Shown: in pieces, positions 3,496 to 30,999 of the stretch
How positions within the stretch are numbered: position 1 is the first letter of the stretch
Layout: every line of letters begins with the position of its first letter
Assembly: GCA_965649765.1 (NCBI GenBank)
Contig: OZ287755.1
Span: 59,396,001-59,460,000, forward strand
DNA length: 64,000 bases
Direction: 5' to 3'
Source: Bispira polyomma
Taxonomy: Eukaryota
Notes under the pieces: model-generated
What the model was told of the DNA's origin: nothing
The model's database searches: none
What the model saw: the letters and a program-made list of their open reading frames with translations, nothing else
Made by a program: the position numbers and the translations under genes

Positions 3496-6400
3496 TATGG
3501 CGCTATAGAAGTAAAAAGATTAACATTAGGCGTTTATTATCACTTTATATATTGTGTATTTATAAATTATATAAACATTTATTTCCTTTAATACATTACT
3601 TGTACTGGTACAGGGCTATATAGTACAATAATGAGCTATAGAGAATAGCTATGGTTACTGTAAATATGGTACACCTGTTACATTTAAAATCATTTTCTCC
3701 AAAATATTTTTCTAAAATGAAAACAATAGTGAGCTGTAAGTTACAAAAAAGTGTAATTAACTATGACTAACATAAACTTGCCAATTATTGTAAAAAGAAC
3801 AGGGGTTAATTCTTTTATTAGAAACTTCTAAAAGGCTCAAGAGTTCGACCATCTTCCACAATTGCTCCTTCTATTCACTAATGTCTCCTTGGATACCACT
3901 TTCTTCCATTCCCTGGCTTGATTATTTGTGAATAATTTATTCTTTGCTATGCTTAGAATTGGTTCCAATACGAAGATTGAGTGCTATAAGATGTTTAATT
4001 GGATTAAATATACATATTTGCATCTCTTCAAATGTGAAATAAGTCATACTTTTAGTAGTACATGTTATGTTACAGTCAATTTGTGTAAATGAGGGATTTC
4101 GTGAAATTTCTAGAAATGTTAGGAATTTTATGAAATTCCTGATTTTGTCAGTGATGTCACGATTTAACCCTAATAAATGTTATGCATACTTTACTTACTG
4201 GAATAATGAAATACACTTACTTTTCTAGTGATTAAAATTAAGTAATAATCAAAAGTGGGGCAGTTGATGTCATATAGTAACAAGTTCATGCAATTTTAAT
4301 ATGTTCACTTCAACTACAATTTTCGTTTTTTATACAATATGAGTAATAAGTCTAGTAGTTGAATGATGTGCATGGAAGACTCATTGCTATTATGGATATG
4401 TCATCAGCAAGTGCCATAAAAGCAGGTTGCATAGTCGTTCCATTTGTATTTCAGAAATTGGATTATTAACGGAAGTGTCAGGCTTTATAGTACATTAAAT
4501 ATGCATTTATACCTTTTTACATAGATACAGCTATTGGACACCAAATAATACAATACCAAACACGCTATGCACATACAATGCATTAAATTAATTAAATACT
4601 CAGGGATCAATTAGTGAAGTATATGTTAACATCAATAGCAATGAACTTTTTGCCAATTCTTATAAATAATTTTTGTTTTAACTTCCGTTTCTTTTTTTGT
4701 AGATTAATCGAAAAGATGTTAATTTATTCTACTAAGAATAGGCTATGTAAAATAAAAATTTAGTTACCTCCACTTAAGTAATTGAACAAATGGCCCTTTT
4801 TCAGAAAAAAATATGCAATATATAAAGATAAGTAATTTCATTGATTCACTCAAATTAAATTCTGCTTATAACATATACTAATTAGTAGGGTTATGACCAA
4901 GATAGTGTGAACTATTTCTGTGAATGTAAGTTTTTTTGAAGATCAACAATTGTGTACTAGGAAGTGTTATTAATTGTTTTCCACCCCATAAAACATAAGA
5001 CACTTTATCAATAGGATAATCTCATCGTTTCACAATGTGTTGTAATTGTTTTTGTAAATTTTATTTGAAATGATTTTTTACAAGTAAATCAGATAGAACA
5101 TCAGGACCGATCTCTCCATACCCCTTTTTTTAGCAGTTATTTTATGATCAATGACAAACACCCCCAGGACATTGAACCTGTCACCCAGGCATTAGTTGCT
5201 TCTCACAATGGTTTTCATGTACTCATTTTTTGTTTACTGGACAAAGATGTCATCGGTTTTGTTTTTGCTGGCCAATTTAAAAAAAAATTATATTAATAAT
5301 AATAATACCCTCTAAGGCACTAATATCCAAAGAGGGAAAGTCTCGGGGCAACAAAAGGTCATTACCAGAAAAGCATCCACCAAGGGATAGGTAAATAAGG
5401 AAGGGGGGGGGAGGGGGAGTTTAGGGCAGTCTAAAACGGTAAATGCCTTGTTCATGCAAATGTCTTCTCACTGTTTTAGTTGAGACTCTGACTTATGGAA
5501 GCAGTCCCTAAAGTTATGCCCCTTTATCAAGTGATTGTAACAGTTCACAATCTCCACCATTGTTTTAGGGAGGGTTAGTATGGCCTTTTTTAGATGAAAT
5601 ACTAGACCAAGTATTCTGCCGCCAATACCGGCTTTTTAAACTGATGTATAGCTGATTGGCGACAGAGCGGCTACCATAAGCAAATTGGTGTAATTCAAAA
5701 TCGGCACATATAGATATAGAATCTGGTAATCTCATTCCTTATATATGATATAGTGGCCCATTTTCTGTTATTTCATGCCGACATGGTACATGTCAATTAA
5801 TATAAATACTAAACCACAAACATTGCCACCACTCTGTCGGCCATTTTAAGTCAGGCTAAATTTACGTTTTTGTAATGGTTTTTATCCAGGCCCTTTTCGT
5901 GATTCAGCCGTCAAAATAACATTAAGAAAGCGCGCTAAAAAGGGACGGATTATTCGGTACATACATTTTCATACCCAATAAAAGACATACAAATATCAGT
6001 TTCAAATATTTAAATAGCACCAGTGCGATGAATTTCACTCCTGATAAAAAGTATACAAATATGAGTTTCAACTTCTATTAGCACTAGTTCGATGAAAATG
6101 GCTTCATTCTATAATTAAGACACAATAGTGTGTAAATAATTCACTTTTATCTATCCCACATTAACTCTTGCAATTTCATTGCTTTGAGATCTAACTGACT
6201 TTTATTTACCCAGCCATTATAACTGCAATCGTATGGGAAGAGGAAATAAGTCACGACCCATTTGGAACATCAATTAGCCAAGGCAAATATCCGTAGAAAT
6301 GGACAACATAGTTATAACAGACAATAGTAAGATGTATCGGTTGTAACAATGTTAGTCAAAATAAAAGATAAAAATATAATGTATCTAAACAATATTAAAG

Positions 6401-23333: not shown

Positions 23334-25231
23334 AAAGTATGTGGATGATACAGAATTAACTTAAAATTAATTTTACATTTGAAGGAATATTAACCAGAGA
23401 AGTGTAAATGTTACAAAATATGTATCAAAATATTGAGTGAGTAGGGGTATTTTATCATGATCCAAAAAAAAACAAATTTACATTTTATTTGTTTAATGCT
23501 AACCTATGTTTTTAAACTAATCATTTTATGTGTAATTAAGTGTAAGCAACTCCATTAGACTAATATTAATTATTATATATTTACTCATTTATACTGGCAA
23601 ATATATGTTGTTAAAATTGGATAAATAAAATTGTAGATTGCTCATGATGTTTCTTCCTTGATTGACAAAGACTGTTAGGGGTCTGTTATATCAATAAACC
23701 AGTAAACAAGCCATTTTATTGTTTTGGCAGTAAAATACAACTTTTTCGTAGTAGATACAGGCCGGGCGATACAATTGATCGTATCAGCCGGCGCCCGAGA
23801 ATTTGTATGTAAAATCTGTTAAAGCTGCACACGTTTTTAAGGTTTTAGTGTCAATTTTAAGTAGTATATCAGACAGAAAGTTGTTTAAAAGTGGGACCAA
23901 TATAAAATACCAACCATAAACAACATGATGGTATATTAAACTTGATTTTTAGTTCTGTATAAATACAAATTTGAAGTTAATTATTTATGGTACCAATTCT
24001 GTACTTCTTAGTTTTCAGATTTGCGCTGTGACGTCATAATTGATGTTTTTAAACGTAAACAATGTATACAGTTTTGGCTTATTTTATTGTCATAGTAAAC
24101 AAATTGATCCATCAATTGTTTAAAGCTCTTGATATATATAAAATATAGGCAGTATGCAATATTATTTTGTACAAAACCTAATTTTTAGAGTAGTAGAAGT
24201 TTGTATTTGAAGCTAATTCTTTAATGTCCCAATTCAGTACTTTAGTTTGTAAAATGTATATAATTTGCCACGAATTTTCAATTTTTGAGGCTCTTTCAGA
24301 CAATATTGAAAAACAATGTACTTATACACGGGTGGTAAGAATTCTTGATGGTATGATTTCTGGACAATAAATAAAATTATATGGAAATACCAGGAAATAC
24401 ACAGAAAATACCATGTCAAACGAACATTATTTTGTAATTTATTTTACACTACTGAATGTCTTCTTACTGATAAGTGACAAAATATACAATAAATCATAAT
24501 TTCAACGTATAGATATACAAGTTGGTCCTGATAAAATATTGTTTATTTCAGATTCAATAATAAAGTTATGGAAAAAATAAATAATAACAGGAAATAAGAT
24601 AAAGAAGCATACAGAAATGCTATTTTTGCACAATTGAATTTCTAGGTGACACTCTGCCTTGCACTTCCTCCTAGCCGCCAAACTGTCTAGAATTCATACC
24701 ACTTGACATATAAACAAATTTTAAACCTTATTTTAAAGAATCTGTCAAAAGATTTTTTATTGATATTAATGAATGACAAGTGTTTCATGTATACCTATTT
24801 CAGTACATTTGACTTTTTAATACATCTGATGCGACACACTTAAATTTAAGTAAAAACATCAAATTCTGTCCAGAATCGATAAACCAATAATTGTACATAA
24901 CCATAACCTAATACATAGCCAATTGTACATTTGCATTAACCAACTTCAGCTCAAATATTGCCTAAAGATGTTATACCACATTATCGGAGGCTTGGGGGTG
25001 CAATATCAAATGTGATATTGAACAGTTCCACAACGTGGAATGAAGTAAACTGAAGAAGATCAAAATGTGTTCTTCTCAAACTTGCCTCATTTTCGTATTG
25101 TTTTGTGCATTTTAGATCAAGGAATTCCTTATTTTGTGAATACCGCTTTTGATCCAAGGATCACTTGAAACTTTTTTACAACTTAGATCTGATCTTGATC
25201 ATTATTTGTTGAACTTGTAGCCACTAGGATG

Positions 25232-25308
25232 TGACGTATCCACTCCTGACCAATAGGATCGAACTAAGGTAATATCTGCCAGGTCCCCTGTTGTTTTGGG
25301 TATAAATA
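25232..25308 (+). promoter_or_regulatory. Putative promoter (CRE half-site, CCAAT, TATA) of the MADF-like gene
   Basis: TGACGT at 25232, CCAAT at 25250 and TATAAATA at 25301, about 150 bp upstream of the ATG at 25460. Confidence 0.4.
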
Positions 25309-25459
25309 GGACCCACCATTACCACACTTTTTGTATTTGGAGATTGCTGGCTGGTGTTACATGTTATATTTTTAGGAAGGCTTTTCATTGTTTTCTTATA
25401 TCTTTTGAGATAGGGCAGATTTTAAAGCTTAGGGTTTTTATATATATACAACATTAAAA

Positions 25460-26870
25460 ATGCCGTGAGATTCAAGAGAAAGATGATGAAAAAGAAGTCA
25501 AGTCCATAGTTTCAGATGGGGGTTACATCTTAGGAATCCGAAGCACAGACGAAGAAAAAAGATAAGAGAGCTAGCTCACAGCAGAGGGAGGGGAAGAAGA
25601 AAAGATACCAAAGTGACAAAGAAAAGAATGGGTTAGAATTCACGGAGTCCCCCCAGTTCCGTGGTAGAGGTAGGAAAACAGGCAAGATGGTACACATTGT
25701 CCTCACTGAAGCTGACAAAGAGGCAGTAGTGGATTTTGGGAGGGACCACAAGGTACAACAATAGGCACGAGCAATCCAAGGACCGCTCACTGAAAGACTG
25801 ACTTTGGGATGAGCTTGCAACCAGCTGTGGCCTAAAGGTTGCAGACATCAGGACATAGTTTCCATTTCGGCAAACCCGTTTTGGCAAGCGGATGATTAAG
25901 AAGTCAGGCCAAGCACCCCCAGAGTTCACAGACAGGAAAATGTGGTTGCTGAGCGATCGCACATCGTCAAACACGTCAATTACTCAGCTTTCAAGCCCAG
26001 TGTGACGTCGTCCCAGGGAGCTTCAAACTCGCCTACCCCACCACAGACCAAGAGCCACAATCTGTCCAGGTGCTTGAGCATTGGTGGAGACATTGCCACA
26101 GAGACCAGCCTTTGTAGCAATCACATGCCATATCCACTCCGTCAAAGCTTGGACATCAGCACCCAACTGATGGAGCACCTGGGCCTAATGACAAGTATTA
26201 TAGCAGGTTTCGTGGTTGAAACAAAGAAGCCGGAGAAGCCAGAGTCTAACAGAGCCGCATTTTTTTCCTTTTGGGTGCCGAAGCAGAGAAGTGAGACGAG
26301 GGAGATTTTCACACTTTTTCAACACTTAGCAAAAATGATAGAGAGAGAAGTCAGCCATGTAGTGCTTTTACCAGAACTACTTCATCTGCTAGTTATACAC
26401 AGTCTACACCACCGGCAGCTGCATCCTATGTGCCAACAAACCAAGTTCTTTATGTGGATCAACCGTCGACTGCAAATTTTAGAGCCAGACCTGCAGCCAC
26501 GTCATAAGATGCAGATCCACCACACAACCACTAGTGGACCTTATTTTGTACTGGATGAAACTACAGCCACAACCAAGTCGGTTAAACTTGTTATCCCATC
26601 ACCAACTAAACAGTTTTTGAACCCACCGTCAGTTTCATCAACTTATGACGACACAGCACTAAACACCTCATTTGTTTCTTTAGACATTTTGCTACAGACG
26701 TGAACACTGATATGAGGTATGAACAGCTCTTCAGTCTTAAGCCTATCATCATTTCAACAACACCAAGCGATCAACCAACAATACAGCTTTTACCGCTTCC
26801 AGTACCACCACCGACCACTACCTCTGCATCACTATAGCAGGCTTCTCCTCTGCTGCCACAGTAGCTAGTT
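25460..26870 (+). pseudogene. Decayed MADF/Myb-SANT-like DNA-binding protein (Harbinger accessory ORF)
   Basis: LTEADKEAVVDF, then from 25802 LWDELATSCGLKVADIRT*FPFRQTRFGKRMIKKSGQAPPEFTDRKMWLL, a MADF-like signature. A Pro/Thr/Ser-rich tail follows; there are many stops and frameshifts. Confidence 0.7.
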
Positions 26871-26918
26871 AGCAGTCTCTGTGTGTTGATCTTGAGACCT
26901 CCCATTGTCGTACTTCCA

Positions 26919-26940
26919 GGTTGTTTTCAGGACCACCCAA
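26919..26940 (+). terminator. Histone-mRNA-like 3' stem-loop (degenerate)
   Basis: GGTTGT-TTTC-AGGACC-ACCCA versus the metazoan pattern GGYYYT-TTTH-ARRRCC-ACC. Confidence 0.5.
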
Positions 26941-27249
26941 ATCTTCCACACACACCCACAGCCACCCCCCCACACACACATACACACACGCACCAAAAGA
27001 AAAACACGCACAAGTGGTCACACCAATGACAGGGTTTGAACCCATGATCTCTGACACTCAATGACCCATTAACCTATCTTTTGCAGGGGAATGTTTAGGT
27101 TATATAATAACGGGACCACAGTAGGAAGTTTTCATGTCAGTAAAGGTCTTTTGTTCAAATGTATTTCAAGAAGGAGTCTCTGTCTTCAATGTGCCTAAAA
27201 TATTTCATGTTATGGGTAACTGATGGGATTTCAGATCACCTAGCAACCT

Positions 27250-29375
27250 TTGCCTATTTAAATTTACCAATACCTGCCTCACATAAACCTTGTGTCATAT
27301 AATACAGAAATATCAGAAAAATCAATATAAACAAATTTAGAGACGATATCCTGGAAACTAATATCATCAAACGTCCATGCAAAAATGCTAAAAGCCTTAA
27401 CCTACAATACAATAACTGCCTTTCTACTGTCCCTGATAAACATGCGCCATGGGTATCAAAAACCCTTCCCCCAACTAACCCCCATGAATGGACCAATGCC
27501 GCCATTACAGAGGCCAAAAGACGCAAACACCAACTTGAGCGTCAATGGCATGCACAAAATCCTCCTTAGACAGAAGCTGTTACCGTATCGCCACAAATAA
27601 TTACAACAAGCTAATAACTGATGCCAAAAAGCAACATTATGACTATATCATCACTGAAAATCAGGATAATCCCAAAAGGTTATGGGCCTCCATAAACAAA
27701 ATTCTACATCGAACATCAGAGAAAGCTCTCCCCATAAACCACTGCCTTATTTTTTTAGCCGAAAAATTTGGAAAATTTTTTATACAAAAAATCAGCAACA
27801 TTCGTGACGCCTTCCCAACGATACATCTCTTCAATCCTCCAGCCCCAGGATATAAGGTTTGTAACCTGTTTCATTTCAGTACACTGTCAGAGCTTGAAGT
27901 TCTAAAACTCATCAAATCCTCTACTATTAAATCTTGTGAATTAGATCCCATCCCAGCAGTTATTCTAAGTCAATGTCTTGACATTCTAGTCACACCCATA
28001 ACAAACATATTAAATTTTTCTCTTCGGGATGGTGTTTTTCCCACCTGTTTCAAGACAGCAAATGTAACTCTCTTGATTAAAAAACAAGGGCTTGATAAAA
28101 ACCAGCTCAAAAACTACAGACCGGAATCAAACCTCAGCTTCGCCTCAAAAGTTATCAGAAAGCTGTAGCTCAACAAATTTCTGACCACCTGAATAGACAA
28201 AACATTGAAAATCGCCACCAGTCTGCCTATAGAAAATTTCACTCCGATCCTACCTTACTCTTCGGGCACAAAGAATTAAATTAGATGATCACCTATCATT
28301 ATCCATAAAGCTACCATATGGAGTACCCCAGGGATCCGTCCTTGGCATTCTACTTTTCACCCTTTATACACATCCTCTCAGCACTGTCATCAATAAACAC
28401 AGTATAAAACATAACATGCATGCATATGACACTCAAGTCTATATCTCTCAATCCACAAAATGCAAATACTAACATAGACCGACTTTCAGACTGTCTGTCT
28501 GATGTCTAGGCGTGGATGAACTACTCCAAACTAAAGCTTAACCCTGACAAAACAGAATTCATCCTCATAGGAAACAAGAAAAACAGTGAACTCCTAAAAT
28601 CTTTGTTTCCCATCTCCCTGCTGGGAAAAGACATACTACCTTCCGAAAATGCTAAAAACCTAGGTGTCACTTTCGATTCAGCTTTTTCGTTCGATACTTA
28701 TATTGCCAACATCTGTCGCTCCTGCTATTACCACATACGCGACATCGAAAGAATCAGAAACCACTTGTCCATGGACACAGTGATAACTGTGGCAAATGCC
28801 CTTGTGAGTAGCTGCCTCGACTACTGCAATTCTCTCTTGTACGGAGCAAAAAAGTCATACATTAAAAAGCTCCAGTCCATCCAAAACTACCTATGTAGGG
28901 TTATTTTTCGCCTGGGTTGTCGCACAGACGTCACTCCTTACCTTAAAAAAATTACACTGGCTGCCCATTAAATCTCGCATGTTGTTTAAGATTCACGTTA
29001 CCACTTTTAAGGCTGTAGTCACTCAACAGCCCACCTACCTTGCCTCCCTTCTTTCCTTCAGTAACCGCAAGAGAGGCAACAGACTCTCCGTCACTTTGGT
29101 CAGACCAATCAGAAAGGCGGGATTCAAAGCGTTCTCCACTGCAGCTCCACGGTTTCAGTTGACACACTTATCGGTTTTAGGAAAAAGCTCAAAACCTATC
29201 TTTTTAATCTTGCCTACCCACCTTAGCTTCCCTCGTGTACGCTTCCACTTCCTTCCTTACGACTTTGCAATGTCCATGGACTTAATGATTGGGAAAATGA
29301 TTCTGCTGTTGCGCTTTAGAAGATGCCTAGCATCAACAAAGCGCGTTAAAATTCTATAATAATAATAATAAGTAA
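27250..29375 (+). mobile_element. L2/CR1 LINE ORF2 fragment (RT), decayed, inserted in the Harbinger relic
   Basis: Peptides KSCELDPIP, KNYRPESNLSFASK, GVPQGSVLG, KLKLNPDKTEF and SCLDYCNSLL, with a (TAA)n tail at ~29356. Confidence 0.9.
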
Positions 29376-29532
29376 TAATGTTGGACTCGAACGTATTCTG
29401 TTTCAATAGTGGGACCCAAAATATTACATGTATGGATTTTGGGTTCGAACCTTATAAAGTGTGATTTGTGAGATCTGATTGGGTTAGGGAGTAAGGGGTA
29501 ACAACAGCTTTGTAATTGTTTTTGGAATATAT

Positions 29533-29559
29533 TGGTGGTCTTGAAAAGGACTTTTTTGG
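29533..29559 (-). terminator. Histone-mRNA-like 3' stem-loop (degenerate)
   Basis: The minus strand reads CCAAAAA-AGTCCT-TTTC-AAGACC-ACCA. Confidence 0.55.
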
Positions 29560-29639
29560 TTACAGCTACTGCGGCATCTAGGGCTTGGTGTGGCTTCTCA
29601 TTAATCTCAGGTGGTTAGGCTCAGGTCAGGCTCAGGTCA

Positions 29640-29850
29640 AGACCTAATATTCTGTCATTCAGCCACGAGACTGCCCCCTCATTCATAAAGTAGTCCATTA
29701 AAGTATCCCTTTGCTCTTACACCGGTCTAGATGGATTTCTTTTTTCATTGGTCAATTGATCCCCCACCAGCTGCTTCTCAGACTCAAACGGATCATCTTG
29801 TGAATTTGGGTGCTCCAGTGCTTGGCTCCCACAGCGGCTTCTTAAAATGT
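29640..29850 (-). pseudogene. C-terminal remnant of PIF/Harbinger (HARBI1-like) transposase
   Basis: The minus strand from 29716 reads EQRDTLMDYFMNEGAVSWLNDRILG, matching the 'RD.L..YF...G.V.WQ' C-terminus of Harbinger transposases. It is convergent with the MADF-like ORF. Confidence 0.6.
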
Positions 29851-30999
29851 TGTGTAATATAACACATTTTTTTGGTTTTTAAGTTTTTTTAATTATTACA
29901 TTTTTACATTATAATACAATTCACAATGACAACACAAAGAAGAACTGTTATACAGAGACATATACAGTGGTATTATTACTAATATTATACATAGTGACAA
30001 AAGTAGTAAAATTTACAAATCAGTTTGAAAGACTCTATTTTTAATATTATTAGGCGTACAGATATTAGCAATCGTTTTGAGTTGGAAGATTTTGGTTAGT
30101 GTATAGTCATGTGATATAATATTTAGGTCACATTATTTCGCAGATCTCTCGAGCTGCAAATTTTACAAAAGTTCAATGAAAAATATCGTGGTTGTATAAA
30201 AGTTCAATGGGGATGTTATCCTTTAATGATAAAGTAAATATATTTACAAAGAACCAATACTTATGCATCATATATTTAAATCTGAGGCTATTATTTGGAA
30301 TAATGACTAAGAATTAACATTTTATTATATTTTGCAAAGTCATATAAGTTCATTTGTTTATGTGCTCCAAAGATTTTTACTTCCGTTGAACTACGCATGC
30401 ACACTCGGAACTACGAATTGGTTTATATCTTCTATTTTCGTTTTATTGGTAGTTGTGAACAATGACTCGATCTACCTAATTTTCCATTGTTCTTCCTTGC
30501 TATATACACAGTATCGTTTGAAGTATGACATCAGTTTTAGGTGAAGGTCGTTGGAGAATTGTGAACAACATGTGGATATCCATCTGTGTACTTAAGTATC
30601 ACTCACCTTAATTCTGTCTTTGAAAGCATGTGTTATAAATAGCCTATGTGAAGGCCTATATAAAACAATCAAATAAATTAAATAATTAAACAGTTCATAT
30701 ATGTGATACAACAACCCTCAGTACTGTATACTATACACAAAACAGATATTAATTATCTAAAAACTTCAGTATATAGGACCACAGCTTTTTATAAAACAAT
30801 TAAATAAATTAAAATACTTTATACTCCGGAAACTTCTACATACAAAACAAACACAAGTTTTTCAAAATTCTTTTTTTTTCACTGAAGCGTTTGACTGGGG
30901 CCTCACAAAATGTGGGAGGAAAAGTAAAAAAGGTTTATATAGTTATATATAACCTCAAACCTAGTATTAGCCACATATATAAATCGTTCTTTAAAAAGG

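Follow-up and report, generated by a model that had tools for sequence, protein, structure and literature searches.

Here we report that a PIF/Harbinger DNA transposon has probably borrowed histone-type finishing of messenger RNAs (mRNAs), a reading drawn from sequence comparison. The element lies in a 64,000-nucleotide (nt) stretch of Bispira polyomma DNA (contig OZ287755.1, positions 59,396,001 to 59,460,000), hereafter the window, which is part of contig C8 of the 1.04-Gb eukaryotic assembly that we searched. Positions 25211–29865 of the window are a dead internal fragment of such a transposon, with convergent genes for a MADF/Myb-SANT-like partner protein and for the transposase. Past the partner gene (site 1) and past the transposase gene (site 2) stands a stem-loop of the kind that ends replication-dependent histone mRNAs, and the two sites are two decayed copies of one module, one after each gene (Table 1). 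We consider it likely that this signal is used for 3'-end formation of both transposon mRNAs. With somewhat less assurance, we favor the wider proposal that in a PIF/Harbinger lineage both proteins come from mRNAs that lack a poly(A) tail and whose 3' ends are processed by SLBP and U7. These would be the first non-histone protein-coding mRNAs of animals to end in this way, and they would tie the supply of transposase to replication, perhaps with maternal stores. Whether coupling to S phase is the selected purpose of the signal stands, in our estimate, at roughly even odds.

The superfamily and the RNA signal are each known, and they have not been described in combination before. To our knowledge, histone mRNAs are taught as the sole class of animal protein-coding mRNAs that carry a terminal stem-loop in place of a poly(A) tail. 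Our literature search, whose scope excluded subscription journals, found no transposon with histone stem-loops, including in a word search of a 2026 preprint about how histone 3' processing evolved.

An initial annotation of this DNA, made from its letters, had described the two motifs, and both read as described in position and strand. Each carries two substitutions relative to the family majority GGTCCT-TTTC-AGGACC, with two stem pairs broken, and site 2 retains an A-rich 5' flank. The stems lie ~54 nt (site 1) and ~93 nt (site 2) past the ancestral stop codons, close to the ~50 and ~90 nt past the coding ends given there. When as many as three mismatches to the 19-mer GGTCCTTTTCAGGACCACC were allowed, the whole window yielded exactly two matches, sites 1 and 2, with two mismatches each, against a chance expectation of 0.03 (100 shuffles). 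Comparison with their counterparts in other copies revealed that sites 1 and 2 are homologous, with 85–93% identity over 31–37 nt. This homology rules out a chance origin, which the initial annotation had called less likely from the placement of the motifs, yet it also means that the sites count as one feature present twice and not as the two independent hits claimed at first.

Both flanking genes are of Harbinger type, in line with their first description as a MADF-like pseudogene on the plus strand and a transposase C-terminus on the minus strand. A better-preserved homologue of the stop-ridden partner gene (L035:2159-2953:-) matches the Pfam family MADF_DNA_bdg at 4.2e-6, and homologous copies of the transposase match DDE_Tnp_4 (1e-22 for L036:299-853:+ and 1.4e-10 for L007:1165-1719:+). 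A first pass gave more than 1,200 candidate copies of the transposase remnant, and the 40 that were listed share 78–86% DNA identity with it. The two genes converge and both are without introns.

We compared the window sites with other copies of the family, for which the genome holds more than 1,200 candidates for the site 2 region and several hundred for site 1. The initial annotation had proposed that a family consensus might restore perfect hairpins, and the majority of the other copies does so at both sites. Thirty-eight other copies aligned at site 2 have the majority sequence AAAAAAGGTCCTTTTCAGGACCACCCA; at site 1 the majority of 20 other copies is TTCCAGGTCCTTTTCAGGACCACCCA, a perfect stem-loop followed by ACCCAAATGTTCCAAGAACA. 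Both majorities contain a perfect 6-bp stem, a UUUC loop and an ACCCA flank (GGTCCT-TTTC-AGGACC-ACCCA). A fully paired stem survives in 13 of the 38 decayed copies at site 2 and in 11 of the 20 at site 1, and the hallmarks of the Rfam Histone3 model (RF00032), namely a 6-bp stem, a 4-nt loop with U1 and U3, a G-C second pair and ACCCA, are found in the family majority and in 24 of 58 decayed copies. When scored with this model, whose gathering score is 34 bits, better-preserved copies reach 36.6–40.2 bits after the transposase gene and 34.4 and 35.2 bits after the partner gene. Stem-loops of other Harbinger families of this genome score 41.9–45.6 bits, on a level with host H2A (42.9) and host H1 (40.6). 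Five other top matches of a genome-wide Histone3 search follow transposase-like frames, and two more (L062 and L063) follow Q/P/T-rich frames that we take to be the C-terminus of the partner gene.

Genome-wide counts link the module to transposase genes that are still open. The strict 24-nt pattern AAAGGYYCTTTTMAGRRCCACCCA has 479 matches in the genome and none in a reversed control, and most of the matches listed have the transposon stem GGTCCT and not the histone stem GGCTCT. In a protein search of the genome, transposase candidates numbered in the thousands, and many of them keep a long frame open; open-frame copies include C2:31640634-31641413, C1:26289523-26290307 and C1:41701546-41702362. 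Contigs C1 and C2 have an essentially complete pattern list. Cross-reading it with the protein list there, we found that 18 of the 34 listed transposase matches have a pattern match 146–251 nt downstream on the same strand; the chance of one pattern match per transposase site is ~7e-5. The transposase frames linked to a stem-loop include some that are open for 429–457 aa, most of them without a stop inside the scored match. Linked frames of 439, 429 and 453 aa are free of stops, and one of 398 aa is followed by the paired variant GGTTCT/AGAACC. In some copies two identical stem-loops stand in tandem, 31 nt apart (for example, C1:56186672/56186703 and C2:63976055/63976086).

Stem sequences differ between families, and they do so in pairs. 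We observed the paired variants GGTCCT/AGGACC, GGCCCT/AGGGCC, GGCTCT/AGAGCC, GGTTCT/AGAACC and AGTCCT/AGGACT, in which pair 1 is G-C or A-U, pair 3 is U-A or C-G and pair 4 is C-G or U-A. Pair 2 (G-C), pair 6 (U-A) and the loop residues U1 and U3 are invariant among 40 aligned modules, whose rows were chosen for intact stems and are 98.8% paired by construction, leaving only the pattern of changes informative. The invariant pairs and loop uridines are positions that we take to be critical for SLBP binding.

Resemblance to the host's own histone genes extends past the stem-loop. As host reference for the downstream element we used a core histone cluster (L068, C3:73852196-73855241) containing H2B (-), H2A (+) and H4 (+) within 3 kb, each ending in GGCTCT-TTTC-AGAGCC with stem-loop scores of 39.5–42.9 bits. 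In the 40-module alignment, CAAGAACA or CAAAAACA starts 8–9 nt past ACCCA in H4, H2B, H1 and the transposon modules, all of which also share a second block further on, AGCT.TT.GTTG. Overall, 35–40 nt downstream of the stem-loop can be aligned to 3' flanking sequence of host H1, H2A, H2B and H4, and the transposase module is ~86% identical to the H1 3' flank over ~59 nt, with four stem differences that are all paired (manual count). The histone downstream element bound by U7 small nuclear ribonucleoprotein (snRNP) is purine-rich and lies at a set distance past the stem-loop. By its position and purine-rich make-up, the first shared block is a putative U7-recognized histone downstream element, the feature that the initial annotation had suggested looking for, and the block is common to the host's real histone genes. 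In the window it persists after site 2, while only its first 9 nt (26940–26948) are left after site 1. The perfect family majority, the downstream element and the Rfam scores thus support, at the level of sequence, the co-option of a histone 3' signal proposed at the outset. Of the contrary outcomes named there, those that sequence can address, such as a consensus without hairpins or flanking frames of non-Harbinger origin, were not observed. The upstream regions of those transposon and histone loci that were compared share no similarity above chance. The H1 genes themselves lie apart from the core histone cluster, in a tandem array of at least 62 copies with a period of 1,727 bp (L070–L090, C4:54.70-54.81 Mb), each ending in GGCTCT-TTTC-AGAGCC-ACCTA.

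The module recurs in a second organism at considerable divergence. The closest public proteins to the transposase are only 50–60% identical, and three of these, from ENA assembly ERZ22147071, are intact transposases of 418–434 aa in the same layout (L097–L099). Starting 18 nt past each transposase stop codon, these elements carry two tandem AGTCCT-TTTC-AGGACT hairpins followed by ACCAAATATTCCAAAAACAATTA; the hairpins are 23–25 nt apart, and the ACC flank and downstream block accompany only the second. A single locus extends as far as the partner gene; there this 444-aa gene (L103:7411-8742:-), which matches MADF_DNA_bdg at 4.9e-11, precedes GGCCCT-TTTC-AGGGCC with that downstream block behind it. 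When the ENA transposase gene and its 3' flank were compared with the genome of the window, the transposase core aligned at 65–70% and the sole non-coding match was the stem-loop module, at 76%. Module-bearing genes are intronless, with single open frames of 418–457 aa and 3' untranslated regions (UTRs) of 18–93 nt, and no AATAAA or ATTAAA was found from −120 to +200 around the stem-loops in four modules of the intact elements L097–L099. The linkage to open frames, the paired stem changes and the retention across organisms suggest that the module has been kept by selection.

A full-length ENA element (L103) spans 5.9 kb, and its two modules form its longest inverted repeat, with 44-nt arms that are 89% complementary. 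In this single element the ends match each other, starting TGTTCCACCA at 4540 and 10410, and are accompanied by subterminal repeats. CCC stands on both sides of the putative ends, which is 3 bp but not TWA, again in one element. The MADF-like gene is present here twice in tandem (L103:7408-9738, minus strand), encoding 444 and 301 aa.

Several observations weigh against histone-type processing of these mRNAs. The window's own sites fall short in Rfam: site 2 scores 20 bits with Histone3 (E 0.09 for 7 kb and 4227 families), site 1 has no match at E ≤ 10, and no family exceeds its threshold anywhere in the window. The Histone3 check proposed by the initial annotation consequently fails for these two sites and succeeds for better-preserved copies, which exceed 34 bits. 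Site 1 is preceded by TTCCA and lacks the A-rich run usual before histone stem-loops. For the open-frame copies of this genome, the link between frame and stem-loop comes from coordinates alone. Two pattern searches for a U7 small nuclear RNA (snRNA), each combining an anti-downstream-element with an Sm site, gave counts no higher than reversed controls. No stem-loop was found in Harbinger homologues of Mercenaria, Pinctada imbricata, Mytilus trossulus, Portunus or two short Logan contigs, a comparison that set aside one contig ending at the stop codon and one deleted copy. Several of the stem-loop-free homologues (L094, L095, L101 and L104) have AATAAA motifs after the stop codon. The six homologues without a stem-loop indicate that the feature is lineage-specific, not shared by the whole superfamily, and not needed for Harbinger function.

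From the likeness to histone genes we infer cleavage, the involvement of SLBP and U7, and S-phase coupling. SLBP would bind the hairpin after each gene and the U7 snRNP would pair with the downstream element, whereupon the transcript would be cut after ACCCA to yield a non-polyadenylated mRNA. Like replication-dependent histone mRNAs, the transposon mRNAs would then be produced, translated and degraded in time with DNA synthesis, and might possibly be stored maternally. The element might benefit in two ways. Coupling the supply of transposase and partner to S phase would favor cut-and-paste movement from replicated to unreplicated DNA, which gains a copy, and compact 3'-end formation could keep the convergent genes from reading into each other.

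The latter benefit could also be the whole story. In this alternative, which we regard as doubtful, the module is a compact cleavage signal that prevents convergent read-through and double-stranded RNA, and cell-cycle coupling is a side effect or absent. The genes do converge with only 0.6–1.3 kb between modules, and the modules are the innermost inverted repeat, where read-through would start; our data do not separate this explanation from the S-phase reading, and both can hold. However, the convergent Harbinger genes of the crab homologue L101 are served by ordinary poly(A) sites. We consider it unlikely that the module is a passenger relic, that is, a captured host histone 3' flank copied along without function. 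Its identity to the H1 3' flank is what capture would leave, and the Harbingers of six other animal sources do without it. An unused 60-nt passenger should nevertheless decay or vanish at these divergences, whereas the module stands after both genes in sense orientation, changes its stem in pairs, is perfect beside long open frames and is retained in diverged families and in a second organism in which other searched non-coding DNA no longer aligns.

The inverted repeat formed by the two modules, the longest of the intact element, could instead act in DNA, for instance where the MADF-like protein or the transposase binds, or where recombination or cruciform formation takes place. We find this very unlikely: the modules lie between the genes and not near the ends, which have different subterminal repeats of their own; the sequence is that of the RNA signal of host histone genes, down to the strand-specific ACCCA flank and the downstream element; and paired stem changes fit an RNA hairpin rather than protein-binding DNA. 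The idea that two degenerate hairpins in AT-rich DNA look histone-like by chance could appeal to the two stem mismatches at each window site and to scores below the Rfam gathering value. Its probability is nonetheless vanishingly small, as it is refuted by the two matches where 0.03 were expected, by the perfect family majority and by the 479 genome matches against none in the control. Histone-type 3'-end formation is the reading that we prefer.

Set beside histone genes, the transposon genes share the stem-loop in its particulars (6-bp stem, 4-nt loop with U1 and U3, G-C pair 2, U-A last pair, ACCCA), the A-rich 5' flank at the transposase site, the histone-like downstream block at the usual distance, and an intronless structure with short 3' UTRs. 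Unlike histone genes, they code for a transposase and a MADF-like protein, occur as thousands of scattered copies rather than in a cluster at a histone locus, and in some copies end in two tandem stem-loops 25–31 nt apart. Within PIF/Harbinger, the pairing of a DDE_Tnp_4 transposase with a convergent MADF-like second gene is typical; one intact relative, L103, has putative terminal inverted repeats, subterminal repeats and a putative 3-bp duplication. The histone-type signals after both genes set this lineage apart, and the sampled clam, pearl oyster, mussel and crab homologues and two transcript-like contigs are without the stem-loop. Other mobile elements also carry non-standard RNA structures at the 3' ends of their own messages: in plant and fungal transposon RNAs, triple-helix stabilizing elements shield a tail that is poly(A) or A-rich. 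Here, by contrast, the signal would replace polyadenylation and bring in histone-specific machinery.

If this reading is correct, these elements would be the first natural exception to the rule that only histone mRNAs end in stem-loops in animals, and they would add a new means by which a mobile element times when it is expressed. Poly(A)-selected RNA sequencing would then underestimate their expression, and thousands of sites, if transcribed, could act as decoys that compete for SLBP and U7. Annotation of histone genes from Rfam matches would mislead in this genome, since the great majority of the perfect stem-loops listed have the transposon stem GGTCCT.

Table 1. Features of the transposon fragment and its insertion, in window coordinates
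Feature	Position	Strand	Description
Upstream region of MADF-like gene	25211–25686	+	Coverage by other copies begins at ~25211
MADF/Myb-SANT-like partner gene	25687–26864	+	Intronless pseudogene with several stops and frameshifts (translations, homologous copies)
Site 1	26919–26939	+	GGTTGT-TTTC-AGGACC-ACCCA; 16-nt stem-loop at 26919–26934, then ACCCA
Intergenic space	26949–27229	.	CA-rich at 26949–27005, then family sequence including the 27010–27098 block
Non-LTR (long terminal repeat) retrotransposon fragment	27230–29370	+	Foreign insertion between the two genes; family coverage 0–1
Family intergenic sequence past the transposase 3' module	29371–29499	-	Coverage by other copies
Downstream element of site 2	29500–29532	-	CCAAAAACAA block and CAAAGCTGTT block, both common to host H1 3' flank (alignment)
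Site 2	29559–29533	-	CCAAAAA (29559–29553), AGTCCT-TTTC-AAGACC stem-loop (29552–29537), ACCA
PIF/Harbinger transposase C-terminus	29646–29865	-	Last ~75 codons; cut off at ~29865

The window copy lacks both ends of the element. Coverage by other copies delimits the family homology, broken only by the foreign retrotransposon block, and these copies run at least 350 nt further left, placing the true left end outside the fragment. A search of two decayed copies from this genome, merged for the purpose, revealed no terminal inverted repeats. The ancestral stop codon of the transposase, at 29648–29646, has been mutated. Direct reading upstream of the partner gene reveals CCAAT at 25250–25254 and TATAAATA at 25301–25308, which are putative promoter motifs.

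Candidate U7 loci came from two sources. The three best Rfam U7 matches of the genome (L091–L093, 29–31 bits, below threshold) belong to one dispersed repeat family (CCTATAGG, GACCTTG) and are not U7 genes. In the pattern searches, C5:35957189-35957217(-) and C2:17202136-17202156(-) carry the complement of the CAAGAACA block and, after it, UUUGUCUAG or AAUUUCUCUAG as a U7-like Sm site, at counts not above the control. The C5 candidate, the best one, complements 15 nt of the H4 flank, but 17 nt of this flank recur in its reverse complement, so it may be no more than flank-like sequence on the opposite strand.

The retrotransposon fragment is itself decayed: a piece at 28320–28466 has a weak Pfam RVT_1 match (E 7.8e-4, under the cut-off) in a frame broken by several stops, and the two longest open reading frames of the insert have no Pfam match. 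On its left flank, the 89-nt block at 27010–27098 is 90–94% identical in many copies, against 70–80% for the surrounding family sequence, and its distance from site 1 varies between copies; ARAGORN found no tRNA in it. Short tandem repeats occupy the space between the genes. The stretch 29400–29472 corresponds to a unit that is tandemly repeated with a 58-bp period in another copy (L014, C11:55381647-55382105), and the ENA elements L097–L099 have units of ~55 bp in this space.

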